Made by a program: the position numbers and the translations under genes | From: Utricularia gibba | Taxonomy: Eukaryota > Plantae > Magnoliophyta | Length of the DNA stretch: 64,000 nucleotides | Reading direction: 5' to 3' | Assembly (NCBI GenBank): GCA_002189035.1 | Contig: NEEC01000026.1 | Location: 186,001 to 250,000, forward strand | Notes under the pieces: generated by a model | What the model was told of the DNA's origin: nothing | Database searches by the model: none | Seen by the model: the letters and a program-made list of their open reading frames with translations, nothing else | In this document: positions 1 to 56,966 of the stretch, in pieces | How positions within the stretch are numbered: the stretch's first letter is position 1 | Layout: each line of letters begins with the position of its first letter

Positions 1-1280
1 ATTTCATGTGGGCGTGGGGCTGGGCTATCCAATGCAATGCAATGCAGCTGTCGGGTCGGGCGTATGGTGGGAAAAGCCTGGAGAACTAACTAACCAACTG
101 CAACAGTAACTGCTCTGCCAGGGGAAGCGGGTGCGGGGGCGCCTACTGGACTTGTAAAATTCTTCCTAATTTGAAAAATTAATCTAATACTGAATATGAT
201 TTGAATATATTGGAATACGATATGATAGGGCGGGCTTACTCCCGGTCACATGGGAATGGACCGAGCGGTTGGCCATCTGCTCACTCTTTTACACACGCAC
301 ACACGTTCAATTGCAGCACGGCAAATTTAATTAGAGATCAGAGGTAAATAATTTTTTTTTTGCATTTTCATGATAGTATGAATTCTAAAGTCACGTTTGG
401 TTGATATATAGAATGCTAAATCGATTTTATTTTATTTGAATTTAGATAAATATATTTTATATTAAATTGATATGTATAATTTATTTATATTTAAAATAAA
501 AACACATATGGTATGTGAATATAAAAATTAGCTATTTGATAATTTATATATAAAATTATGAATATATCTTTCACTTAAAAAATACTCAATTCCTTTTATT
601 TAATTTTTCCTTCACCTCTCACCTACCCCATTTCTTCCCTTGTGTTGTGTGATGGCACTATCTATTTTTTTGACAATACTAAGGTAAGTAAGAGCTTTGG
701 TTCATGGGTTATGCTTTGAGTGATTTGGATTTTAAATCACTCATTGTAGGATAATTGAACTGTATGTTGTTGATCCCTAAAGTACATTTTTCCTGCTTTG
801 TTTCCTTCATTGTAGGACAATAGAGATGCTTAACTCAATGGCTATGAAAGAATGTAGCAAAAAAAACCAAATGAAATTAGAAGTCTAAAGAGAAGAAGTA
901 TCTGTTATAGGACTTGAAGCAAATATTGAAAAATAATTGAAAGACCAAGAGCGGATTCAGAGGTAGAGATTATCTAGTGTTGCAATCAACTGAAAATCTT
1001 ATCATTGTTGGCTTTAAGTCTTGGTTGTGCCATCATAAAATCTGATGCACACCCCTCTGCATGTATGGTCTACTGCATTCAGCTCATTTAATGTTTTTTT
1101 ATATTATATCATAGTAAAATTAATTTGGGTTGTAGTAAAGAATCTTCTCAACTTGAATGCTTCACTTACTCTCTTTCGGTTCCTCCTAATAGCCCTCTTG
1201 ATTTCAGAATAGAAATCAAAATCAACTTTATAAGAAGAACACAAATGAATCAAATGAAACACACAACAATTAAATACTAT

Positions 1281-22439: not shown

Positions 22440-23633
22440 CTAGGTTGACTCGAATGTGATTCCCGAGTCCATAGAGGCATCGCCCACAGAAGAGGAATCG
22501 CAGCAAGTGATCCACCACATTTTATCTTCAAATCCGGCAGCAGGCGTGGAATTGTAGAGCGTAGATATATCTGAAAGTATCATGTCATCTATACCTGAAA
22601 ACTTCTTATCTCCCAACAATTCCAAGCCATTATGGGCTATTAAGCACGACCTTGGTTCCCCTCTAGACCCTGAAGAAACCTCGTTAGCGACGACTGAATC
22701 CGAGGCTGACTTTGCTGAGATGATCATGGAGTTCATCATTTCACAAGACGAAGTTTCTTCTTGTGAGAAAAAGGGATCCTTGAGTAGCTGCAGAGCAGAA
22801 GGCCTCAGAGAAGCAGGTGATAAGCACTTTTCTATCATCTCCTTCACCTCTGAATCCGCCACTCTCCCTAGAGCAACAGGCTTAATGCCTGAAGTTACTT
22901 TCTTGAATATCTGCCCTGGATTTGTGCATTCCGAGTAGGGATATTCCAGAGTAACCATCTCCAATAAACACATCCCAAAGGCATATACATCAACTAATTC
23001 ATCGTACTCCTCATCATAGTACTCTGTTGCCATGAACTCTGGTGTCCCAGCCAGTACCCGAATTGGGGCTTCCTCCATGAATATCGACAACCCAAAATCA
23101 CCAATTTTGATCTCCGTCTCCCCGTTGCAAGCATTAACAAATATATTCTCACACTTCAAATCACGGTGAACGATTTTGGGTTTCAGAGTGTGGAGATAGT
23201 GAATGCCCTGTAAAATCTGCCTGCCCCAGTTCTTGATCATCTGCTGATCCACATTGCCGAGTTTCTTCGCGTGCTGCCTCAGATTCCCACAACTGAAAAG
23301 CTCAGCCATGATGTTTACTCGCCTGTTGTTGGCATCGATCCAATGGCAATAGCACTTCATGACGTTATGGTGCGCCAGAGACTTCAATAAAACGGCCTCA
23401 AAGCACGACTTTTCGTAGGCACCCGGAGATGGCGAGGTGGTGACCTCATCATCGACAGAGATTTGGTACCATGCAATCTCCAATCCGTCAACCAAATCAA
23501 AACCCTTGAAAACTTCTTTGAATGCCCCCCTTCCAAGAATGTTGTTATACCTGACGTAACGCCCACAGGGAGATATCTCCTGGACCTCGGAATCCAAATC
23601 CATCCCAAAGAAGCGCGATTGGCGGCCACACAA
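22440..23633 (-). CDS. WNK: WNK (With-No-Lysine) Ser/Thr kinase, single exon, 397 aa
   Basis: GRGAFK with the catalytic Lys in subdomain I, IAW in subdomain II, HRDLKCENIFVN, GTPEFMA, YPYSEC, KKVTSGIKP. Confidence 0.9.
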   Translation of the reverse strand: MCGRQSRFFGMDLDSEVQEISPCGRYVRYNNILGRGAFKEVFKGFDLVDGLEIAWYQISVDDEVTTSPSPGAYEKSCFEAVLLKSLAHHNVMKCYCHWIDANNRRVNIMAELFSCGNLRQHAKKLGNVDQQMIKNWGRQILQGIHYLHTLKPKIVHRDLKCENIFVNACNGETEIKIGDFGLSIFMEEAPIRVLAGTPEFMATEYYDEEYDELVDVYAFGMCLLEMVTLEYPYSECTNPGQIFKKVTSGIKPVALGRVADSEVKEMIEKCLSPASLRPSALQLLKDPFFSQEETSSCEMMNSMIISAKSASDSVVANEVSSGSRGEPRSCLIAHNGLELLGDKKFSGIDDMILSDISTLYNSTPAAGFEDKMWWITCCDSSSVGDASMDSGITFEST

Positions 23634-27362: not shown

Positions 27363-28935
27363 TCAGCGCCCCCTTGATGAAGCTTCATGCAGCTCTTCCT
27401 GTGAAGACGGAAAAAGCTCTATGTAACGGGCTCCCAGAGTCATCCGATCCTTCGACAATGCTTCTTTCGCATCTTCTGCGTTGCAGAACTCGATGAACGC
27501 TTCTCCTGTTGGCCTTCCCTCGGAGTTAACTATGATCTGGATCGACTCCTCTGATAATGTGAAGTTCTTGAAGAACTCTATTATATCATCCTTCCCGGCA
27601 GAAAATGGCAACCCCCTCATCCGCAGTATGGGAACTCTAGCCCCACCTCCATCCTTCCCCTCCACAACAGACTTTGAAAGAAGCCTGATTTGTCAAGGTT
27701 GTAACAAGAAACAAATAATTCTTGCCTAATCCAGGATTATAATCATGCGAAGCTAGCAGCAGGGATAGTGTTTCTCAGTGGTCAGGGGGCAAATATTAGA
27801 CACGGATTCTAGAGAAACGATATGTCAGCAGCACCCAGTAGACAGTTAAATCACAAGGGACGCGTACCTTCCCCTGTTAGCAGCTTCCTCCAGCTCCTCA
27901 CGTGATGCAGGGAAAAGCTCGATATAGCGATTTCCCAGGGTCATCCTATCCTTAGCCATTGCAGCTTTAGAGTCTTCGGGACTTGCAAACTCTACAATTG
28001 CTTCACCAGCAGGTCGCCCCTCAGAATTTGCTATCAGATGAATTTTTTCTTCTGGAAGATCAAAATCCTTGAAGAAGTTTTTAATTTCTTCCCTGGTGGC
28101 AGAGAATGGCAAACCCCTCAACCGCAATAATCCTTTAAACTCAGACAAGTCTCTCGCCTCATCTGGAGATCTTGCTCTTGGGGCAGCACGCCGAGGTGAA
28201 CCACCAGGAGCATCAAAAACTTCATTGGCTATGGCCTTGTAGTATTCCTCTTTTCTGCTTCTAAAAACTTCTACATATCTGCGGCCTATGTTTTGCCTAT
28301 TCCTCTGCAGAGCGAAATCAATCTGAAGAGGATAACCCAACACACAGTACGCTTCCCCTGTAAATTTCCCACCCTTGTGCACAAACAGGACATCAATCAC
28401 ATCCAGACCATGGAAGAAATCCACAATCTCAGCTTCTGCACAATCAAAAGGCAGTCCTCGAAGTCGAACTACAGGGAATGGCGGCGGTGCATAGGAATAC
28501 GAAGGCGGAGGTGGAGGGAGAGCGTTGTACATATAACTCGGACCAGAAGCACCATAATCCATCAATCTCTGCCTTTTGAAACTCATCTCCCGTGCATCGC
28601 CCGAATCAGCATACTTCCTTCATTGAAAAACCAAATAAAGTCAGGCTACCAAATCAGAAAACCATCATCATATTTTTTCAATGGGCATCCTAACTACAAA
28701 GTCATTTTTGGGTTTTGGCTCTATTCTTGCATTTTTGTTGAAGCACAAATTAGAAGCATTTTCTGCATAGCCACGAGGATCAAAGGACAAAATTTTACTG
28801 GTGAACCCACGCAAGAGATCCCCAATTTGAAGCCCAAAACGACGCAACAAGGCGCGGATGAAACCAGTGCATGGGAATCAATGATCCTAAAGCCAAAGGA
28901 AAGAAGAGAGAACGGGACTTACCCCGGAGATACAT
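27363..28935 (-). CDS. hnRNP F/H-like RNA-binding protein with three qRRMs; exons 28923-28935 (out of frame, see findings), 27868-28617, 27363-27684; usable in-frame ATG at 28586
   Basis: Three RLRGLPF/RMRGLPF...RYIE/RYVE qRRM units. A phase-2 GT-AG intron (27685-27867) joins the 246-aa and 100-aa ORFs in frame. Confidence 0.85.
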
Positions 28936-31074: not shown

Positions 31075-32241
31075 TGTCAGGAGCCTCTTCTCGGAGGGCC
31101 GTTTGGGAATTGATAACACATATTTTTGAGTGGCTCAATGCATGTAATTTACTCATTTTGTACTACAAAAATTAAGCTTAATTGCCTGTTTATATATTTT
31201 TGCACATAAGTACCGTAGGAGTGCACTTTTAGTCTTAGATTTAGTCCCAACCTTCTAACAGTTCCCTTCGAGCAATGCAGCGTAGATCCTACACGAAGAG
31301 AAAGGTTAATGAATTGTTCGTTGTAAGACCCCAAATCCCGATCCATGCGAAGTTCAAACAAGTCTACCATGGCGGAGACTGTCACATTATTCAAAAAATT
31401 TTCGCAACAATCCCCTCTAACCAACTCCCACGTTAGGGGTTGAGCGCTCCGTGAGAGTTTCATAAACCAGGATTGTGCGGATCCATCCAGACTTGTGGCA
31501 ACTATTTGTAGTTTCTCCTCCTCTGTTGAAATAAGGTGATATGCAAAGAAATAATCCATCTTGTTCGCCTAATGGTTTGGGTCCGAACTGCCGTCCAATT
31601 TGGGAACATCGAGGCGAGCAGCCTTGAAGCTCCGTTGAGAAGAGCTGGTCTATTGCTCTCCGGAAGGTGGAGTACTCGGGTACCCACGAGGGCTCCGTCC
31701 CCCAGAAGCTTGCGAGCGTGTGCAACCTTATAGGGTTTCCATCCTATTCACCAGCTTGTCCAATTGTGATTGTAGCGTACGCTGAAATGAATCTATTCTC
31801 TCTAATCGATTTGTCAACATTTTGAATTGCTCTGGATCCATGGATGCCGATGAGGCCAAAGGAATCGACTGCTCTGATACCAAGTTGTCAGGAGCCTCTT
31901 CTCGGAGGGCCATTTAGGAACGAGTACGCGGCCATTCAGTGAGGAACTCAACCGGATCCAATTGCCGGTAGGAGTGTTTCTTCCTGTTCCCTATCGTGAA
32001 GACAAGAAAGAGGAATCGAACAATTCTAAAAGAAGGCTTCAAGAACTGAGTGGGTCAACTAGAAACTAAAGCTGTCATTACAAAAGCGGTCAAACCATAT
32101 ATAATGTCTAAGGCAAGACCCTGCTCAAAATACTACGGCACAATGGCTTCTAATTAAGCCTCCCTTTTTTCATGACTTTCTGTTGCTCTGCGTCTTCGGC
32201 TATATACCAGAGGGTCCTTCCTGGGAGTTGGGGTCCTCACA
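31075..32241 (-). mobile_element. Internally deleted chromovirus-type Ty3/gypsy element (5' LTR 31886-32241, iMet PBS 31871-31882, partial gag, 36-bp 3' LTR stub 31075-31110)
   Basis: 356-bp LTR TG...CA followed by TGGTATCAGAGC; gag DYFFAYH..EKLQIVATSLDGSAQSWF; TSD TGAAG at 31070-31074 and 32242-32246. Confidence 0.88.
31111..31293 (+). mobile_element. 5' fragment of a family-A Athila-like LTR
   Basis: Begins TGATAACACATATTTTTGAGTG and aligns with the start of the LTR at 50817 (minus). Confidence 0.8.
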
Positions 32242-40370: not shown

Positions 40371-40861
40371 CTTCATACCTCCCATGAGCATTAAGGCAAA
40401 TAAGATGTGGAATGCTCCCATGTATTAGAAACCAGGTTATGGTTAACCCATGCCCATATGTGAAATCCGTATGACGCTCAATCCGTAGCTGTTATTTGGA
40501 TTGAGTACAAGTTTTTTTTAATTTAATTTGAAGGATACTTGATCCTAAGATTTGGATCGAGTGGAGTTTTTTTAAAAAAAAAATCCCAAGTTGAGTATAT
40601 TTATTTGGATCAAGTGAATTGGATGAGAATTAATGGTTTTGTTTTTTTTGTGGGTTTGTGATAATAAAACAAGACACTGTAATATATAATACAATCTAAT
40701 AGGCAAGAAAATATTCCATAATACAAAAGAGGCAAACCAACAATGTTAATCTATTGCTTTTGCATAGCATAGCAAAATAGACAACAAAATTGATACTCCT
40801 ACATAATACAAAAGAGATAAAACACGTGGCATCAAATCATTGTTTTTTTTTATTGAGAAAA

Positions 40862-42164
40862 TGTTAAGTGTCATTTTCTAGTTTATTATTAGGTATTATT
40901 ATGTGTTATTCTAGTGTTAAGTCATCCAATTAGAAATTATATTGATAAGTAATTGAATTTCCTAGAAAAATCCTATTTTTCTATTTTGTATATATTTTCT
41001 CTATCTTTTTCGTGTACTTTGACCGAGATATGTCAGGAGGCAGTTGTGGAGTGTTGCAGGAGGTCAGACTCTGACTTTTCGTGCCTTGTACGTGACTTGG
41101 AACAATTGTGGGTGGAAGAATGACACTGGTCAAGACCCCTGACTTACGGCATGTTAGAGTTTGCAGAAATGATTAGACGCTAACTTGCACGCAAAGGAAA
41201 GCTGGTGGTGCACGCAAGACAGAAGGAATGATGGGAAGAGGACTAGAAGGAGTTAATGCATGAGGAGAGTGAGATAAAAGCAACTTGGAACACTTATTTT
41301 CGGAGCTTCTTTTCGCACTTAGCCTTTGAACTTAGAACTTTTGAGTTCTTCCTCTCCTCAAGGAGGAAGAACACTTCATTTCCAATTTCATTTTCTGTTT
41401 TCATGGCCCTTTGTGGCTAAAACCTTTTAGTTTTTAAGAGTAGATGAAGTTTCCTTCCAAGTCTTGAGCAATACACTCGGTTCTTCGCTGAATACATTTT
41501 GGATTTCGCATACTTCCACGTATCTTGTTGCAATCTTTCTGTAACGACTCCTAGTCAAGGTCCATGAGTAGCTGGCCATTCTTCACGGATTTTGGTGAAG
41601 ATCAAGGTGAAGAGCACCAACTCCAATCCTACTAATTCGAGAGAAGTAGTGGATTGTTTATGGCCTAGGTATCACGACATTGGACAAGTTGTGACCTCGA
41701 GCCTGCCACCGGCCATTGGCAATAGTTGGGCGCACACGTGCAATTTAGTTTTGAAGGTAATCGACGGCAATCCTCTTGTCTTCTTAATCATCCAAGGGGG
41801 AATCACATGAGGCTATTCCCGTGTCTCCTTTTCAATCAAAGTGTAAGGGAGAGTAGACTATTCCTTGCTCCTATAACCAGCTATTCAGAAGGAATTAGTG
41901 AAAACCGAGGCAAGGATAGACAAAGGAAGGAGATGGAATCTCATTCCCACGAACTGCAACCCGTAGTCAAGGCCCATCATTTAGGTTGTATCTTTCATTT
42001 CTGCATTTCACCAAACCCTTTTTACAAAACCGTGACATTTTGTAGAAGTTTCTTACAAAACACTTTTCACGAAAAACAACTTCCTCAGATTGACACTTGT
42101 ACTATGCTTTTTTGTGTTTTACGTTTTATATTTTTTAAATTTGTTGAGGAAACGACACACAATA
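40862..42164 (+). mobile_element. Solo LTR, Athila-like family B (1303 bp)
   Basis: TGTTAAGTG...GACACACAATA; TSD GAAAA at 40857-40861 and 42165-42169; collinear with two other copies. Confidence 0.9.
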
Positions 42165-42276
42165 GAAAAAAAAACAGCACTTCGTGAAAATCACTTGTCA
42201 CATAATTTGAACTAGATTAGCAACCCACTCAAGGCGTCACTCATTTCAAAAAAAAAATTCTATTGGCATGCATGAC

Positions 42277-43555
42277 TGTTAAATGTCATTTTCTAGTTGT
42301 TTATTATGTGTTATTACGTGTTAATTAGATATTAAGTTGCTTAAATTAGGAATTAAATTGATAAGTATTCTTTTTTTCTTAGAAAAATTCTATTTTTTTT
42401 ATTTTATATATATTTATTGTTTTTTTTCGTGCACTTTCACCCAAAATGTCAGGTGGTAAGCTTGAAGTGTTGCAGGAGACTAGACACTGACTTTTCGCGC
42501 CTTTCACATGACTTTGGTCAATTGTGGGCGGGAGATTGACACTAATCAGGACCCCTAACTTACGGCATGTCAGAGTCTGCAGTAATAATTGGATGCTTAC
42601 TTGCATGCATGGGAAAGCTGGTGGCACATGCAAGATAACAAAAATGATGGGAAGGAGAGTAGGAAGAGTTAATGCACGTGAGGAGTGAGATAAAACCAAC
42701 TTGGAACAATCTCTTTCATGACTTTTGGCACTTTATTCTTAGACTTAGAACTTTTGGTTCTTCCTCTCCTTCGAGGGAGGAAAAACACTTAGTTTTCCAT
42801 TTCGTTTTCTATTTTCATGGCCATTCATGGCTAAATCCCTTTAGTTTTTGGAAATAAATAAATTTTCTTTCAAGTCTTGAGCATTAATCTCTGTTCTTTG
42901 CTGAATTCATTCCGGATTTTACATACTTTCATGCATCTTGTTGCAGTCTTTTTGTAATGTCTCCTAGTCATGGTTCATGAGTAGTAGGCCACTCTTCGTG
43001 GATTTTGATGAAGAGTACAATCTCCAATCCTACTGGTTCGAGGGAATTAACGAATTGTTTGTGAGTAAAGTACCGTGACAATGGACATGTAGTGACCTCG
43101 TACCTGTCATTGGTTCTTGGCAATAGCTGGGCACACATGTAGAATTCGGATTTGAAGGCAATCGACGGCAATCTTCTTGTCTTCCCGTGCCTTCTTGTCA
43201 ATCAGAGTGTAAGGGATAGTAGACTATTACTTGTTTCTATAACCAGTTATTCGGAAGGAATCAATGAAAGTCGAGGCAAAGATAGACAAAAAGAGGAAAC
43301 GGAGTCCATTTCCCATGAACTACGTCCCGTAGTCGAGGTCTATTACTTGTGTTGTCACTTTTATTTCTGCACCTAAAAAATCTCATTTTATAAACCCGTG
43401 ACAATTTGTAAAAGTTTTTTACAAAAACACTTTTCAAAAAACTCAACTCCATGAGATCAACACTCGTACTATACTTTTTTGTGTTTTATGCTTTCTAATT
43501 TAAAATTTATTGAGGAAACGACACGCAACAAATTTTTGACATCATTGCTTGGGAG
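42277..43555 (+). mobile_element. Family-B 5' LTR (42277-43530) with decayed tRNA-Asp PBS, truncated downstream
   Basis: TGTTAAATG...GACACGCAACA then AATTTTTGACATCATTGCTTGGGA, a transition-decayed Athila PBS. Confidence 0.85.
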
Positions 43556-44094: not shown

Positions 44095-45221
44095 TGTAGT
44101 TTGCTATACTCGTTTGACCACATACGGGCGGGTTACGTGCAGCGGAAGGTGGGAAAAACAAAAATTTCCCTTTTTGTAACCAGCGATATCTCATATCGCT
44201 ATAGAATGATGCCTCTAGCTCATCCACACGAACTAGAAATAAATCCGACTAGGTTAAAAACAACAAATGTATCACATATATTTTGCCCAAAATATGTTTA
44301 AACCATCTCACGGAATAAACATACATCTGATGCCAATATCTCATATTTGCACCAAGACTTGATTCAACTCTTGAATCGGTATATTGGGAAAACACAGTAA
44401 AGCCAATGCTAATATCTCATATTAACACTGGCTATCAACACAGAAGAAACACATGGAATCAGCGAAGAAAATTACCAAACTCGAAACCAAAGTCGAGTTC
44501 TCTTCTTCGTATCGCTATTCACCGGTTTCGTTTCTTCCTAGAGCGCTTTTCCTCTTTCGGAGTTTGAACACCTCTTCCCAGAAGAAGAACTCTAAAAACC
44601 CCCGAAAGTGGATCAACACGCATTTTAATGTGGCACAAAGTTTTGACGGCAAAATGAGAACTTGGAATCTCATTCCAATATCTCGACAACCTGGCTAGGA
44701 ATTTACCCGACGAAACAATCAGTAAATCTGAAGTCTCATCTCCGTTTACCCGGAGTAATGAATCCTATATTAGTTATTCAGAGATCTTCATATACTATCA
44801 CTTTAGACCATCACTATCGCTGACTTGTATATTTCAACAAGCCTAAATAGTAACAAATCTAAGGCAATAATATATAAGACACAATGAAACCTCAAGTCGA
44901 AGGATTTCCATAAAGCAATCTGAATAACATTGTGTTGAAATATGTAAAATACCATGCATATGTTATTCAGCGTCACATGTTCGGTCAGCTCATCTCATGA
45001 GCCCCCACATGTTTATTCTGACATCTCATGTCAAGCAGCATTCGACCCACTGCCTACTGTATCTTGATAAACACTTTATCAACACAGTAAATAAACAGAG
45101 GTGACAGTTAAGCCAACTATGATGCCCAATCAAAGTATTCAAACTGTGAACCATTTGAATATACATGTTACAGGAGAATCTGCCGAATATTTTTAACAAC
45201 TTAAAAATACATTCTCCAAAC

Positions 45222-45535
45222 ATATAATTCTGGACATTGCCCATGCAAAGGAACCAAGATCCCATAAGAACTCCAAACATATAGAACGGCGATATCACAT
45301 CCTACGAGAAATCGTGGCAAGGGGCGATGTGATAATGGAGAAAATAGCGTCGGAAGAGAATGTGGCCGATCCACTTACTAAGCCTATGAATCAACAACAG
45401 TTGGATCGTCATCTTGAGAAGATGGGATTGAGATACTATAGTGAATGGCTTTAGCGCAAGTGGGAGATTGTTGGAAATATGCTCAAAAGTCATGTAAAGT
45501 TAATGTAAATGTAAAATAATTTTATTGAAATCAAC
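45222..45535 (+). mobile_element. Ty1/copia (Angela-like) RNase H end, PPT and first ~67 bp of the 3' LTR
   Basis: KEPRSHKNSKHIERRYHILREIV..ENVADPLTKP, stop at 45452-45454, PPT CAAGTGGGAGAT, LTR start TGTTGGAAATATGC at 45469. Confidence 0.9.
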
Positions 45536-45575
45536 TATATATATATATCTATATATATAGATATATATATATATA
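45536..45575. repeat. (TA)n tract with symmetric C/G interruptions
   Basis: 45536-45573 is a perfect palindrome centred on TCTATATATATAGA. Confidence 0.9.
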
Positions 45576-46520
45576 CCGAAACCGATCCTAAGGACACTGC
45601 AGCAACACTTGCTTCGTTTCCCATCCGAAGAATCACCTCTTTCGATCGCAATGACCCTCGATCACTCCTAGTCAGCACATGCGTAACGATGTCAGAACTA
45701 GCACCGGTATCTACTACCCAAGTGAGTGGTGAGCCATCAAACACATTGGAAGATGAAGAATGCAAACCTTTTGCTTTCTCCTTGTCCTTACTTTCCTTAA
45801 CAGACTTAAGGAAATCCGGACAGTTCCTCTTCCAATGTCCCTTTTTACTGTAGTGGATACACTTTCCTTTACTGCTAGACTCGCCCTTCTCAAGAACGGT
45901 CCGTTTCCTCTTCATGGGAGCACTCTTAACCTTTAAGTCCTCATCGACCTTCTCTTTTCCCTTCTTCGTGGACTTCTTCTTCTTGTTTCCTGCAATGACA
46001 AGAGCAGCTTCTCTTGTCTTGCTAGAAGAGGAAGCGTTTCGTTGAGCAACCGTCAACTTATTATTGTGTTCTGCTAGCGAGCAGCTGATCTGATTCATGT
46101 GAAAGTTCGTTATGAAGCTTCCAAACAACTTTGGAAGCGACTGCAGAACCAGATCAATTTTCAGATAAGTGTCCATCTTGAAATCAAGATTTTCTAGCCC
46201 TTCTATGAGCATAATCATAGAATTCACATGGGCGCTGACATCTGAACCTTCCTCCATACGTGCACCAAACAACCTACTCGACATCTCATATCGAGAGGAT
46301 CTGCTTGACGCACCATACAGTTCTCACAGGTGTTCCAAGATGGAAGCTGCTGTGGTGTAATTCTCATGTTGCCTCTACAAATCAGAATTCATAGAGGCCA
46401 ACATGTAACACCTTGCCGTTGTCATCTATCTCCCACTGAACTAGCAACTGGTGCTCAACATCTGTGGGATTAGATGGGTCAACTGGCACAAGAGGCTTTC
46501 CATCCAATACACATGCCATT
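45576..46520 (-). mobile_element. Ty1/copia (Angela-like) gag-protease fragment
   Basis: UBN2-like gag (ARCYMLASM..RYEMSSRLF.ARM), zinc-knuckle remnant KCIHYSKKGHWKRNC, protease WVVDTGAS. Confidence 0.9.
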
Positions 46521-46604
46521 CTTGATATAAACACTCACATAGTCACAACATCTCATGCTTGAACTATAAACAAATAATATCACATATCATTCATAATATT
46601 GCCT

Positions 46605-46727
46605 GAATGGAGAGCCAAGAAATAATATCACATCTCGATTCAGATCCATATCCAACTTGTGTCTCTTGTCTTGAAGGGAAAATGACAAAGAGGCCTTTCA
46701 CGGGGCATTTCAAAAGAGCCATAGATA
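46605..46727 (+). mobile_element. Copia GAG-pre-integrase fragment
   Basis: PTCVSCLEGKMTKRPF matches the Copia C..C..GKM.K.PF motif. Confidence 0.85.
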
Positions 46728-47017
46728 ATTCACGCCAGAGGATTCCTTGGAAATTATACAAATTTCAGCGACTTTGTCCGATGGTATTCTGTTGTTATCT
46801 TTATCAAGATAGTACAGGCCGTCTTGTATCAAACCATGCCCAATGAGTTCCATTTTGCTAAGGATATATGTATGATATATTTTGCAAATGAACTCATTGG
46901 GCATGGTTTGATACAAGACGGCCTGTACTATCTTGATAAGGATAACAACAGAATACCATCGGACAAAGTCGCTGAAATTTGTATAATTTCCAAGGAATCC
47001 CCTGGCATGAATTATCT
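46723..47017. repeat. Long inverted repeat: 128-bp arms (46723-46850, 46890-47017), 39-nt loop
   Basis: 125/128 Watson-Crick pairs; both strands encode ELIGHGLIQDGLYYLDKDNNRIPSDKVAEICIISKES (Copia pre-integrase region). Confidence 0.97.
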
Positions 47018-47939
47018 GTTTGATTTCAACTTCATTTTTCCTGTAAATGGAGAACTAGCAAGATCTACATATATTCAAGCATCCACATCAATCAAGAAGT
47101 CACGGACTTCAACTAATTGATTACTACATTCATGTTTATCACATAAACAAGGTATGCACAATGTAACAAATAGAATTATCCTTGCTCTACATCTCCTCAA
47201 GTACATATGCTATTCTTGGAGCATGTAAAACAACAATCAACAGCTTGATTCACATATATCATATGCAATTCTATCTCTGCTCCTAACATTTCTATTCTCA
47301 GGTACCCATGCCATTCTTGAATAAAATGCTAGACAAGTAAACCCATTCAGCCAGCAATCATATAAGTAATTTAATATCTCAGGTACACATGCCATTCTTG
47401 ATATAAACACTCACATAGTCACAACATCTCATGCTTGAACAATAAACAAATAATATCACATATCATTCATAATATTGGCATTATGATTTATGTTATATAA
47501 AGTTAATGTAAATGTAAAATAATTTTATTGAAATCAACTATATATATATATATATATTATTTTAATAAATAATAATCTAATTTTTTAATACTATGAATTA
47601 TAATATTGTTGAAGATATAAAATTCTAATCTACTTTAATAAGAATTATCATTAATAATTAACTATATACAAAATTATTAATAAAAGATAGCTATTTTTCA
47701 TTTAATATTTACATTTTTAATATCAATTTTATTTTAAAAATAAAAAGTTAGTGTTTTAATATTGAGTTAAATCTATTGAACCATTTAGTTATGGTTTTTG
47801 GTTGAACTATTTTTCAAATGATTTGAACCAGATTCATTAATTTTTAATTATAAAATCACGATTTAATCCATCAAAATATTGAAAACATAGAAAATACAAA
47901 GTATGTCCTTAAATATATGATACAATTAAATTAAGAAGA

Positions 47940-48300
47940 TTCATCAAAGTCTTCATCATCGTTCTATATCTCAATGCTTCCAAATGAATTATAATCTAAA
48001 TCCATGTGATTATTTCTTCCTATCAATGCAAACATATACATAAAAAATATAATTATTAAAATTCATTGAAAATATATATATATCCAATACTTATAACATA
48101 CCTTCTATTTTCTCTTCATCATCTCCATTAATACATACAGGAGGCTCTAAAACTCCATAAAGTATGTATTCAAATTCTTCATAATCAAGAAATGGATCAC
48201 TTGGATCCTCAATAACTAATGCGTCTACCATTTCCAATAGTTCAACATCAATTGGATTGCATGTTATACACCATTATTAACCCAACTACATATAAAAATT
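47940..48300 (-). mobile_element. Possible hAT transposase C-terminal remnant
   Basis: NPIDVELLEMVDALVIEDPSDPFLDYEEFE loosely resembles acidic hAT C-termini; weak. Confidence 0.3.
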
Positions 48301-51878: not shown

Positions 51879-52946
51879 CTAGAGGTGCCTCCCCACAAAG
51901 TCCGCAAGAGACTTAAAAACAAATCCACTTCCTCGTGCACGAATCAATCCAGCAGTTCTAAGAAAATGAGCATTAAGAGGGGCTAACCTTGTTTTTACAT
52001 GCAAAAATTCCAACTCAGAAATTTTATCAGAGCATAAACTTTGGACAAGAAAAGTAATGACATTGCCGAATCCAAGATGGTTTATAGTATTCTTCCGATA
52101 TTCCCTATTCATTCGTTCTGCTAAAATTGCCCCTAAATTCAAGGGTTTCTTGCGCAACAAGCACCATATGACAAACAAATCACGCTTGTACAGAGAATTA
52201 AATCCAAAGGCCCTTCTAAATAGCACAACAGAAACAAGCAAGTGAACATATCGCATAGCAGGGTCTGTAAATAAATCAGCTTTCATCCCTTTGGATTTAA
52301 ATTCTATCACATGTTGATCAGTTAAAATTTCATAAACCTTTTCAGCATTAAAATCATCAAGGTAATCAAACAATGAAGTAGCAAATTCATGGGATTCAAT
52401 ATGCTTTTCTGTACAAAATCCTAAAGCTACATTCCATTCAGCAATTGATAATGAGAAATTCTTTCCTAGCAATTTAAATGTAATGGCTGATGGTGCAATC
52501 ACACTTTCTGGTTTCTCATAACAAAAGGTAGAAACAAATTCATACATCAATTCAACATAAGAAGGACGGTTCAAATCACATAAAGCAAGCAACGCAGAAT
52601 CCTCTAAAATTGAATGAACTTCAGTAATTATGCCCAATTCTACCAATATTTCGAAATCTATGACCCTACAAGGCAGCACCCTTGCCCCTTTTACCTCATT
52701 GTACCTGGCTGTGAATTCTTCTTCATCAAAGTGTAGGTACTTGAGGTTGAGCATTTTTGCATGTTGCTTGAAATAGGGGATGCCCTTGCTGGTCATTTTC
52801 CGCTGTGATTTCCCTTTCTCTTCCTCTTCAACCCTACCTGAACTCAAGAACAATGAAATGTTTGAAACAAGATGAACATTACAATGGAATTTACCCCCAA
52901 ATTCACCAAGCGTTTGAGGGTAAATTTGTAAAATCCTGAAAATCAA
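51879..52946 (-). CDS. Athila env-like/ORF2 accessory protein (355-aa frame; likely ATG at 52796)
   Basis: SYVELMYEFVSTF..ITFKLLGKNFSLSIAEWNVALG resembles the Athila accessory ORF; lies between pol remnant and 3' LTR. Confidence 0.7.
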   Translation of the reverse strand: MIFRILQIYPQTLGEFGGKFHCNVHLVSNISLFLSSGRVEEEEKGKSQRKMTSKGIPYFKQHAKMLNLKYLHFDEEEFTARYNEVKGARVLPCRVIDFEILVELGIITEVHSILEDSALLALCDLNRPSYVELMYEFVSTFCYEKPESVIAPSAITFKLLGKNFSLSIAEWNVALGFCTEKHIESHEFATSLFDYLDDFNAEKVYEILTDQHVIEFKSKGMKADLFTDPAMRYVHLLVSVVLFRRAFGFNSLYKRDLFVIWCLLRKKPLNLGAILAERMNREYRKNTINHLGFGNVITFLVQSLCSDKISELEFLHVKTRLAPLNAHFLRTAGLIRARGSGFVFKSLADFVGRHL

Positions 52947-53007
52947 CCGTTCCCCTGTACTTATCTCTCCTGTAACCGTAGATTAATTTCCCATTTTGCA
53001 ACAGGAA

Positions 53008-54312
53008 TGTTAAGTGTCATTTTCTAGTTATTATTTAAGTATTATTATGTATTAATTAAGTGCTAAGTCGCCCAATTATGAGTCTTATTATTAAGTATTT
53101 GATTTTTACTAGAAAATTCCTATTTTCCCATTTTGTGTATATTTTATGCATTTTTTCTCACACTTTGACCGAGGCATGTCAGGAGACTGTCAGGAGTGTT
53201 GCAGGAGTATTGCAGGTGGTCAGACTCTGAGTTTTCGTGCCTTGTACGCAAGTTGGAATGATTGTGGGCGGAAGACTGACACTGTTTAAGGCCCATGACT
53301 TACGGCATGTCAGAGTCTGCAGCAATTATTGGGCGCAAACTTGCATGCAAAGAAAGTCTATTGGCGTACGCAAGACAGAAGGAATGATGGGAAGGGGACC
53401 CAAAGGAGTTAATGCACGTGGGAAGTCATATAAAAGCCACTTGGAGCACTTAGTTTAGAACTTTTGAACAATTTCTCTTGTACTTAGAACTTTTGAGTTC
53501 TTCCTCCCCTCAAGGGGGGAGAACACTTAGCTTCCTTTTCGTTTCTGTTTCTATGGCCCTTTTGGGCTAAAAACCTTGAGTTTCTAGGAAGTAGATGAAG
53601 TTTCCTTCCAAGTCCTGAACAATACACTCGGTTCTTCACTGAATTCCATTCGGATTCCGCATACTTCCACGCGTCTTGTTACAGTCTTTCTGTAACGACT
53701 CTTAGTCAACGTCCATGAGTAGCAGGCCACTTCTCGCGAATTTTGGTGAAGATCAAGGTGAAGAGCACCAACTCCAACCCTGCTGGTTTGAGGGAAGTAG
53801 CAGATTGTTTGTGGCCTAGGTACCACGACAGTGGACAGGTTGTGACCTCGGACCTGCCACTGGCCATTGGCAACAGCTGGGCACACGCGCACAATTCGGT
53901 TTTGAAGGCAATCGAAGACAACCCTCTTGTCTTCCTAATCGTCCAAGGGGGAATCACATGAGGCTATTCCCGTGCCTCCTTGTCAATCAGAGTGTAAGGG
54001 AGAGTAGGCTATTCCTTGCTCCTATAACCAACTATTCGGAAGAAATCAGTGAAAACCGAGGCAAGGACAGACAAAGGAAGGAGATGGAGTCTTATTCCCA
54101 AGAATTGCGTCCCGTAGTCAAGGCCCATTACTTAGGTTGTATCTTTCATTTCTACATCTTAAAAACCCCCTTTTACATAACCGTGACAATTTGTAGAAGT
54201 TGCTTGCAAACACTTTTCACGAAAAACAACTCGAGATCGATACTCGTACTACGCTTTCTAGTGTTTTACGTTTTAAAATATTTAAAATTTGTTGAGGAAA
54301 CGACACGCAACA
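53008..54312 (+). mobile_element. Solo LTR, family B (1305 bp), nested in the family-A element
   Basis: TGTTAAGTG...GACACGCAACA; TSD AGGAA at 53003-53007 and 54313-54317. Confidence 0.92.
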
Positions 54313-54509
54313 AGGAACACAGCAAAAACTCTCCAAAATAACTCCTAGCTAAGTCTAAAAGTGCAAAAATAAAATGACAGGAAAATAAAACTAATAGAAA
54401 TTAAACTTGAGTTGCCTCCCAAGAGCGTCCTTGTTTCCAGTCCTGTTCTAGACTTTCTTTGAGGCTACGTTTTTGTTACATCTTTCAATACCATATCATC
54501 ACCAACGTC

Positions 54510-56966
54510 CTAGGCCTCATTCTGAAAAGTTTTACAAGAATTGTTCAACATTTTGAATACTCCATCTTTGCATCTCCTCCACCAATATGGATCGTCCCAC
54601 ACGTCAGATTTTTCATCATTGAAATACATGTTCTTGTCATTGCATCTGTCTCCAACTGGTACAATTCCTGCAGCAATGAAATTAAAAATATCAGTAGAAC
54701 CTCGTTCCCAAGTTATAGTCTTACCTAGGAGTAACTGTTCATCGGGATATGTTTCTGCAATCATGTAAGCATCTTCAAGTCCATCAATTTTCCTGAAATA
54801 ATTAACACAAACATTCTCCCCTTCAACCTTATCCAAAATTTCCTTTGGATCTTGGGTGAATCCTTCAAATAATGTTGATTCTTGGTCCAACATAAGACTA
54901 ACACTGAAATTTTTCTTCTCAACATCAACCAAAACCAGTTTCGTGTGAGCTAGAGAAGACTTGAAATTCACATATTTGTCTTCTGATTCACGTTCTATAG
55001 CATTCAAATGCCCCATATTCACCTCAATATTTGGTTCTTCAACAAAGCCTTCTTTATATCCATTTTCCTTTTTGTCATCTTCTCTCTCTATATGTTCTTC
55101 AACTAATTCATCCATGATGTCCACTGAGCATACACTCTCAAAATCGCTGGGATAATTGTTCACTTCCTTCATGTTCAGCGTAATCTTTTCTTTATCAAAG
55201 GATAACTCAATTGTACCCATCTTCACATTAATTATAGCATTGGAAGTGCTCAAGAAGGGTCTTCCAAGGATGATGGTCGTATCCTTTGAACTTCCAGCAG
55301 GCATATTCACCACATAAAAGTCTGCTGGGAACACTAGCTGCTCAATCTTCACAAGAACATCTTCAACAAAGCCTTTTGGAGAAATAATTCTTCGGTCAGC
55401 AAGCTCAATTTGCACTCCTGAGGCTTTTAGAGGTCCTAACCTGAGAGTCTCATATACAGAAAATGACATCACGTTTATAGAGGCTCCCAGGTCAGCCATT
55501 GCTCTCCTAATGTTCAAGTCACCTATTTTGCAAGGAATAAAAAATGTACCCGGATCCTTGCATTTTTCTGGAAGTTTTTGGGTGAGGAAGGTTGAACAAT
55601 TCTCACTTAAAAATACCTTCCCTTTTTCCTTCATCTTGGGCTTGGACATGCAAAGGTGCTTCAAATATTTGACACTTCGTGGCACCATGGAAATATAGTC
55701 CAAAATATTCAAATTAAGTTGATTATTACCCAAGACCTTCAAAATCTTCTCCTTCTCATCTTGTTCTTCTTTTGTCTCCAACTTATCAGAAAGAAGTGGT
55801 TCAGTAATCTCTTCTTTAGTAAGTTCTCGATGAGCCATCACTTCTTTCTTGTCCCCAACCGCAACACAAAATTCCTGTTTCTCATCAGTTTTAGTCCTAG
55901 ATTGGACTAAATTCCCGTTTGGCTTCCCCTTTATGTTCCTCAATGTCATTGGGCTGCAATTCATTCTTCCACCAGAATTTGAATATGACGTTGTTGGCTC
56001 TCCTTTCTTCTTTAATTCTCCAAGCTCCAATGCCAATTGAGTCACTTGAGTCTCCAAATTCTTGATGGCTTGTCGATTCTCCACTTCATTTTTGGTTGAT
56101 TGCACCATGAACATTTTCAACATCTCTTCTAAAGAGTTCCCAGAATTTCCTCCAGCATTATGTTGGTTTGGAGACTGAAATTGTTGTTGCATCTGCTGGT
56201 TTGCCCTGCAAAATTGTGGAGCTTGATAAGAACGTTGCTGTTGCTCCTAGAAATTTTTCTGAAATCCTTGCTGTCCAGCTGATGAACTCTCACCCTTGTA
56301 AGAATTATCACTATTACTCCATCTGAAATTTGGATGATCCCTCCATCCAGGATTGTCAATGCTTGAATAGAGATCATATTTCTTCCTTTGTGGCTCCAAA
56401 TATCCCATTGCTTTCACGTGCTCTTCTTCCATCAATTCGGGACATTTATCAGCAATGTATCCCATTCTGTGGCAGTTCCCGCAGGGCATGTTCTTAGCTT
56501 GGAATAAAAAGAGTTCCTTCATCATCTCATACATGGTTGCCACATTTTTCGTTAGCTCACTTTTTGATGACTTTGGCTTGCATTCCAGCTCATATACTCT
56601 TCTATTCGAGGCCTGTTTTCTGATTATGTGTCTGGAGTGCTCAGCCAACTCCTCAAGTAATGCAAGAGCTTCCGTGGGAGTTTTTTTTCTCAAAAACCCA
56701 CCTGCTGCAGAATCCATCATGGCCCTATTTGTGCATAGAAGACCATCATAAAAATACTTGACCAATGCAATGGTCTGAAATCCATGGTGTGGACAGGAGC
56801 CTAGCAGGTGATTAAAACGCTTCCAATATTCATGTAAAGATTCACCATTTGACTGCTCAATATCACTAATCTCCTTCCTTATTTCTTCAGCTTTTGAAGC
56901 AGGGAAATATTTGCTGAGAAATACTTTCTTCATCCCATTCCAATTCGTGATACTTCTAGGCTTCAA
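54510..56966 (-). CDS. Athila-like gag-protease frame with one in-frame TAG (56247-56249), fused to an RNase H tail; no RT or integrase core
   Basis: Retrotrans_gag, CX2CX4(Y)X4C knuckle, protease KCKDPG.F.IPC.IG..AMADLGASINVM, then FPDEQLL-like YPDEQLL and WDDPY linker. Confidence 0.8.

Follow-up and report, generated by a model that had tools for sequence, protein, structure and literature searches.

A near-perfect hairpin of Copia coding sequence in Utricularia gibba as a probable by-product of error-prone repair

Positions 46723-47017 of the stretch of Utricularia gibba DNA analyzed here (64 kb in all, hereafter the window) hold a near-perfect hairpin made of Copia coding sequence. With a probability that we put at roughly two in three, this hairpin arose as a side effect when a Copia copy that had already diverged underwent a single complex event of error-prone repair or template switching. 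Judged by its letters, the hairpin locus appears to be an ordinary structural scar, of a known kind, in a dead and promoterless plant Copia fragment and, because it has neither LTR nor PBS and its gag is destroyed, its function is most likely none. The locus offers a worked example of a hairpin whose every base can be followed back to a putative snap-back copy of a 175-nt fragment within a multi-piece scar, and it suggests how chance repair events can turn transposon coding sequence into perfect inverted repeats in plant genomes.

Geometry of the hairpin

A repeat search delimits an inverted repeat with two arms of 128 nt each, separated by a spacer of 39 nt (Table 1), and together with folds of both strands it bears out the initial annotation, which had described a near-perfect 295-nt hairpin with exactly these arm coordinates. 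Letter by letter, 125 of the 128 positions pair (98% complementarity), the differences lying at 46733/47007, 46739/47001 and 46800/46940, i.e., at the very positions that had been listed; all three are transitions. It had also been proposed that two of the differences become G:U pairs in minus-strand RNA and that the loop pairs further, and both statements agree with the letters and the folds: the minus-strand hairpin RNA would contain two G:U pairs and one A/C mismatch at the three arm differences, the plus-strand RNA one G:U pair and two mismatches, and the spacer (46851-46889) shows further internal pairing in the predicted folds. The predicted folding energy is -243.3 kcal/mol on the plus strand (z -32) and -240 kcal/mol on the minus strand (z -37), and none of 100 shuffled sequences folded as well as the hairpin. 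A 40-nt core of the arm has only two sites in the 64-kb window, which are the two arms (expectation 0), and none of the 15-mers of the hairpin recurs elsewhere in the window. The locus is thus a long hairpin-forming inverted duplication of part of a transposon.

Long-read and amplified libraries can contain fold-back chimeras, and the hairpin could in principle be an assembly or library artefact of this type. In line with such an origin, one public run (X3) has no contig over 46739-46981, and another (X5) has only paralog letters there. However, X3 is a run of low coverage, and X5, which comes from another study, is without the exact locus throughout and holds family copies only. An artefact is also hard to reconcile with the three transitions that separate the arms, with outer junctions that are both unique sequence, and with the embedding of the hairpin in a coherent multi-junction scar with microhomologies. 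Furthermore, short-read contigs of a third run (X1, 2013) carry a locus-specific letter at 46749, where the family has another, and a single X1 contig connects 46714 with 46867, in keeping with the succession of zinc-finger piece, left arm and loop. The X1 contigs support the hairpin as real DNA, although, as the assembly may have been made from the X1 accession, this support falls short of proof. Taken with the anatomy of the scar, these observations make an artefact very improbable.

Another reading would make the locus a member of an annotated microRNA precursor family. Indeed, the Rfam model of MIR2630 (RF04097) matches 46745-46996 end to end and on both strands, at 125.7 bits and an E-value of ~1e-26. 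This score nevertheless falls below the gathering score of the model (144), the conserved 21 nt of the model are matched at only 13 of 21 positions, and unrelated long-hairpin models score as well, i.e., MIR2646 at 100 bits, MIR5512 and MIR856. The most telling control is L001, which together with L002 forms a pair of short contigs from one public run that represent un-rearranged, native-order relatives of the locus: the un-inverted sequence of L001, 84.6% identical to the arm, gave no match even at E<=10. In addition, miR2630 is a probable false miRNA according to its own discoverers (PMC4212123). Membership in MIR2630, MIR2646 and MIR5512 is ruled out by the L001 control and the gathering scores, and kinship with MIR2630 is effectively refuted, the match reflecting hairpin geometry. 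The case calls for caution in E-value scans of inverted repeats, as four models (MIR2630, MIR2646, MIR5512 and MIR856) returned E-values of 1e-12 to 1e-27 on 46745-46996 without homology; matches of long-hairpin miRNA models need a control with the un-inverted sequence.

Identity of the Copia pieces

The sole match of a word search to the arms is P0001, a protein of 123 aa that carries the gag_pre-integrs domain (PF13976) and is 70% identical to the arm translation over 54 aa, residues encoded by the loop being included at the start of P0001. By this match, the arms are Copia GAG-pre-integrase coding sequence, and the earlier view that they are internal Copia pol coding sequence, and not LTR, holds. 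Pfam searches of the arm ORFs and of the small neighbouring ORFs gave no match even at E<=10, so the domain identity of the arms comes through P0001 only. Immediately to the left of the hairpin, 46632-46722 (+) encodes an integrase zinc-finger motif (C-x2-C ... GK ... PF), and five long Copia polyproteins match 46607-46726 in tblastn. On the opposite strand, 46512-45575 reads as Copia gag running into the start of the protease, with a Retrotran_gag_2 domain (PF14223, 1.5e-9). In a search of representative proteins, P0002 was the one close relative of this backbone gag (about 82-83% identity), the other gag matches reaching at most 50% and the long polyproteins ~30%; the protein matches suffice to place the pieces and not to assign a Copia lineage. 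As the lineage-diagnostic RT or integrase core is absent from the locus, the Angela-like affinity named in the initial annotation is at most a tentative one. Farther to the left, 45236-45433 (+) encodes a 66-aa Copia pol C-terminal piece in the orientation opposite to the gag backbone, matched by aa 1761-1826 of P0065 at 50% identity (tblastn, E 2e-13). Beyond this inverted piece, tblastn with polyproteins found no further pol sequence in the window, and no other copy of the Copia family was found within its 64 kb.

All the pieces of the locus derive from a Ty1/Copia LTR retrotransposon, with which they share a gag of the PF14223 type, the PF13976 domain, the integrase zinc finger and a pol C-terminal piece matched to Copia polyproteins. 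In contrast to such an element, the locus is without LTRs, PBS, RT, RNase H core and integrase core, its gag is interrupted, and its pieces lie in both orientations. Instead of the Copia domain order gag, PR, INT, RT and RH on one strand, the locus holds gag, the start of PR, pre-INT, the zinc finger and the pol C-terminal piece in mixed orientation and order. No tRNA-iMet PBS was found within two mismatches in 45000-48000, and there is no LTR pair, the only long direct repeats at its flanks being those of 70 nt and 94 nt (Table 1 and below).

Other transposable elements occur in the window. An exact 12-nt match to the tRNA-iMet PBS consensus, the only one in the window, lies at 31871-31882 (-) and probably marks another LTR retrotransposon. 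An LTR-like unit of ~1.4 kb is found twice in tandem and again 12 kb away (40860-43508 and 53006-54288, 75-83% identity), and is associated with Athila-like gag, protease and ORF1 genes at 51879-56966.

Anatomy and origin of the scar

The Copia fragment is a mosaic (Table 1). Its backbone, on the minus strand, comprises a 5′UTR that runs from 47477 to 47036, a gag ATG at 47035-47033 and six codons to 47018, after which gag resumes at 46512. In place of 102 nt of native gag, six codons after the ATG, stand 504 bp (46513-47016) of patchwork made of segments of 117, 7, 91 and 295 bp, the hairpin being the largest.

Table 1. Segments of the shattered Copia locus and its bracketing direct repeat, in window coordinates.
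Feature	Position	Strand	Description
Right arm	46890-47017	+	Native-orientation pre-integrase piece, contiguous with the loop in family copies
Spacer (loop)	46851-46889	+	Native Copia sequence just upstream of the right arm; quasi-palindrome
Left arm	46723-46850	-	Inverted copy of 46890-47017; absent from native copies
Integrase zinc-finger piece	46632-46722	+	Inverted relative to the backbone and out of native order
Seven filler bases	46625-46631	+	Templatable from a 14-mer 48 nt upstream
Patch a	46508-46624	-	Second, direct-orientation copy of a segment of the element's own 5′UTR
Backbone, upstream	47018-47477	-	5′UTR, gag ATG and six codons; truncated at 47477
Backbone, downstream	45575-46512	-	Gag from about codon 41 onward, running into the protease start; truncated at 45575 against a (TA)n tract
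Pol C-terminal piece	45236-45433	+	Opposite to the backbone; part of the same shattered locus
70-nt direct repeat, left copy	45489-45558		94% identity; ends in (TA)n
70-nt direct repeat, right copy	47492-47560		Partner of 45489-45558

The sources of the segments can be named one by one. Within patch a, 46508-46601 repeats 47384-47477 at 99% identity (the 94-nt direct repeat, with one difference), and the patch extends 23 nt beyond this match; the fragment itself contains its source, at a distance of 876 bp. Three sites, 46572, 46620 and 47448, carry the 14-mer AAATAATATCACAT, and a family contig continues differently after 46624, where the filler begins. The hairpin unit consists of a native 175-nt pre-integrase fragment (46843-47017) and an inverted copy of its last 128 nt, and the inner end of the left arm shows a 5-8-nt inverted microhomology with native sequence (ATGAGTTC at 46843-46850). 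Microhomologies accompany the junctions: GTGTA (5 nt) between patch a and gag, AAATA/AT, AGATA (5 nt) between the zinc-finger piece and the left arm, ATGAGTT(C) (5-8 nt, inverted) and 1 nt. The two arms share one mirror position as their end, native homology giving out there too, and the donors of the pre-integrase and zinc-finger pieces have their native place 98-435 nt past the site at which the backbone is truncated (45575).

At its outer limits, the whole Copia mosaic is bracketed by the copies of the 70-nt repeat (in 45489-45575 and 47492-47572), each with a (TA)n palindrome at its end, and the pol C-terminal piece lies just outside the left copy. Contig depth at family level runs to 45497, and because family contigs cease to match there, the left copy of the repeat is for the most part not Copia. 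At 70 nt, the bracketing repeat is far too long for a target-site duplication.

The native order of the pieces is read in L001 and L002. The former runs from the end of the protease (45646 to 45575) through 98 nt into 46843-47017, then through 71 nt into 46632-46721; its positions 416-589 correspond to window 46843-47017 as a single block at 84.6% identity, and its positions 661-750 match the zinc-finger piece at 91%. The latter runs from 47152 to 47017, through the 102 nt absent from the window, then from 46512 to 45575 and, after 98 nt, into 46843-46900; its positions 1-136 correspond to 47152-47017 at 91%, its gag ORF starts at the matching ATG, and its positions 239-1151 correspond to 46512-45575 at 85%. 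Both native copies have only one arm, with which the loop is colinear. The Copia family is highly repeated in organism A, and its contigs, drawn from three DNA runs of this organism, tell the same story at each junction: they stop matching at 46512, 46624, 46727, 46843 and 47017, they include the native-order joints 46947/46960 to 46632 and 46512 to 47017, and past 46727 their letters encode LELIHSDVC, the expected continuation of the integrase. One family contig passes from the native context of the patch a segment (47244-47373) into that segment, and in the X1 and X5 family contigs the alignment to 46843-47017 is unbroken, with divergence beyond either end. Read from the two native-order relatives and the public-run family contigs, the loop and the right arm are thus one native 175-nt piece and the left arm is its inverted copy.

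Three further observations concern variation within the family. A variant in X1 and X5 family contigs joins 46417 and 47127 via 31 other letters and is a deletion-type subfamily without ~300 nt around the gag start. In L001, a Pol_BBD (PF22936) gene call lies on the opposite strand at 1000-1179 (-), ~250 nt downstream of the zinc-finger region, so that an inverted Copia piece may also lie in or next to the L001 copy. Finally, opposite-strand joints in X5 close to the centre of the hairpin (46814/46918) were considered as a second hairpin allele and rejected, since in mirrored coordinates they amount to a small indel in an ordinary family copy, one half of which aligns to each arm.

A patchwork with such microhomologies is typical of error-prone repair from a template or of a switch between templates. 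[quoted passage not shown] In the preferred reading, the element would have broken in several places at once, nearby pieces being copied into the gap; the location of the donors, 98-435 nt beyond the end of the backbone, suggests one multi-break event. The lower-strand 3′ end of a free 175-nt fragment would have snapped back, paired with a short inverted repeat that is native to the sequence and lies 39 nt away, and then been extended to the end of the fragment, yielding the left arm. Such a run-off would explain why both arms stop at the mirror position where native homology stops. The 8-nt inverted repeat is matched at only 5 of 8 positions in both relatives, so the priming overlap in the progenitor may have been shorter than 8 nt; the origin is read against L001, L002 and the family contigs, which include neither the progenitor element nor the pre-event allele. 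The insertions templated by polymerase theta are usually <25 bp (PMC12426944), whereas the patches other than the filler measure 91-295 bp, a size that speaks against a firm assignment to this enzyme or pathway. As the patches are longer than is typical of MMEJ, the scar also leaves room for a replicative template switch or for reverse-transcription jumps followed by capture.

The latter would place the same anatomy at another moment and in the hands of another enzyme. Template jumps during reverse transcription and self-priming of the minus-strand cDNA in the particle would have produced an LTR-less cDNA, captured at a break near the (TA)n tract, and the product would be equally non-functional. 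Every patch comes from the same element family, with nothing foreign among them, and the snapped-back strand has the polarity of minus-strand cDNA, with its 3′ end at 46843. Whereas integrase leaves a short target-site duplication, the locus has neither this nor LTRs and is bracketed by a 70-nt non-Copia duplication, as would fit capture at a break. On the other hand, local chromosomal templates explain patches from the same element equally well, and donors that adjoin the truncation point of the backbone point more naturally to the breakage of one chromosomal copy. Moreover, self-priming of a cDNA should give a copy much longer than 128 nt, and whatever the mechanism, further events are required for the opposite pol C-terminal piece and the duplicated flank. 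An aberrant cDNA is on balance an unlikely source of the scar, if one that deserves consideration.

The sequence of the arms also gives some timing. At 46922, 46925 and 46956 both arms carry the letters of the window, whereas L001 differs at these positions, as does every X5 family contig that reaches them. The source copy had therefore diverged, by roughly 12-15%, ahead of the duplication. As told from the family letters, two or more of the three arm differences (46940 and 47007) are changes of the right arm after duplication. At common plant substitution rates, 3 differences in 128 nt correspond to ~1 million years, with a Poisson range of several-fold either way. The impression that the arms are young was therefore well founded, the duplication being fairly recent (3 differences in 128 nt, all transitions). 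The 94-nt direct repeat, with its single difference, is compatible with the same age.

Silencing potential and comparison with known systems

The initial annotation had suggested that the hairpin could be a natural "killer" locus, which in the present terms would be an endogenous inverted-repeat siRNA source resembling a small Mu killer: a read-through hairpin would be diced and act in trans on the Copia family. Some features speak for such a role. The 128-bp stem is near perfect whichever strand is transcribed, the putative target family is highly repeated in organism A, and the rearrangement of transposons into inverted repeats can yield trans-acting siRNAs (PMC10827316, PMC3440606, PMC11624286). 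However, the locus contains no promoter-bearing part, LTR and PBS being absent, and the nearest ORFs with a host-gene Pfam domain lie ~18 kb away; these are an RRM-domain ORF at 27846-28586 (-) and a protein-kinase ORF at 22440-23633 (-; Pkinase, 1e-41). The public runs guessed to be RNA speak in the same direction: the sampled words of the locus are absent from them, none of the runs with locus words is recorded as RNA, and one RNA-guess run (X10) has no contig matching the 2.4-kb locus even at 88% likeness. This is a weak negative, as the check used contigs only and contig-based RNA runs drop rare transcripts.

The relation of the hairpin to its would-be targets also weighs against silencing in trans. 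The arms target pol and not the LTR; for the Copia element EVD, LTR siRNAs have been discussed as the route to heritable silencing, the start of which does not require PTGS (PMC11624286). Identity to the hairpin sequence is only 84.6-88% in the other family copies seen, the X1 and X5 family contigs differing from it at 22 of 175 positions and every X5 contig covering 46922-46956 differing at no fewer than four positions there. With L001, the one copy tested in this way, the hairpin has no exact 21-mer in common, the longest shared word being 20 nt. Near identity to active target copies is thus lacking among the copies seen (L001 and the X1 and X5 contigs), and, given the divergence of these copies from one another, the family may have been inactive for a long time. 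In addition, the hairpin is one patch of a repair scar and not a dedicated locus.

Weighed together, these points make an siRNA source of this kind improbable, and a silencing role unlikely. Given the transposon-dense surroundings, any small RNAs from the locus are more likely to be ordinary heterochromatic 24-mers than hairpin-derived trans-silencers. There is a slim chance that read-through from a neighbour element, or an unrecognised promoter in the retained 443-nt 5′UTR, gives rise to siRNAs against a close Copia subfamily. If this were true, one accident of repair would have created a natural "killer" from the coding region of a retrotransposon.

Among known structures, templated patchworks left by the repair of double-strand breaks, through MMEJ or through replicative template switching of the MMBIR/FoSTeS type and including snap-back synthesis, are close counterparts of the scar. 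As in these, a net deletion of 102 nt is combined with a multi-segment insertion copied from nearby in both orientations, microhomologies of 1-8 nt mark the junctions, and the filler is templated a few tens of bases away; the locus matches the description of a "molecular patchwork" (PMC12426944). It differs from polymerase-theta insertions in that its segments are much longer and that one of them appears to be a complete run-off snap-back product.

Endogenous inverted repeats are a recognised class of siRNA sources (PMC10827316), and the locus has the fold-back geometry of endoIR-siRNA loci and of young MIRNA genes, with a stem length between the two (class definitions in PMC10827316). These classes are, however, defined by Pol II transcription and DCL-dependent small RNAs, whereas what the locus shares with them is a predicted fold; it also differs from them in being derived from a transposon and not from a host target gene.

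With maize Mu killer (Muk), the locus shares a natural inverted duplication of part of a transposon that can be folded into a long RNA hairpin. In Muk, ~1.3 kb of mudrA and the promoter-bearing TIRA end of a DNA transposon are duplicated and transcribed, and antisense or hairpin RNA brings about a dominant silencing of MuDR that has been demonstrated genetically (PMC3440606). The present hairpin, on the contrary, has arms of 128 bp taken from internal retrotransposon pol, and its duplicated part is GAG-pre-integrase sequence that includes neither promoter nor 5′ end. Of the features behind the effect of Mu killer, which are a promoter region, long arms, near-identical targets and transcription, the locus is without the first two, has no near-identical target among the family copies seen and showed no sign of transcription in the contigs of the RNA-guess runs. 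Mu killer-like loci or young hairpin RNA genes could nonetheless take their start from scars of the kind described here.
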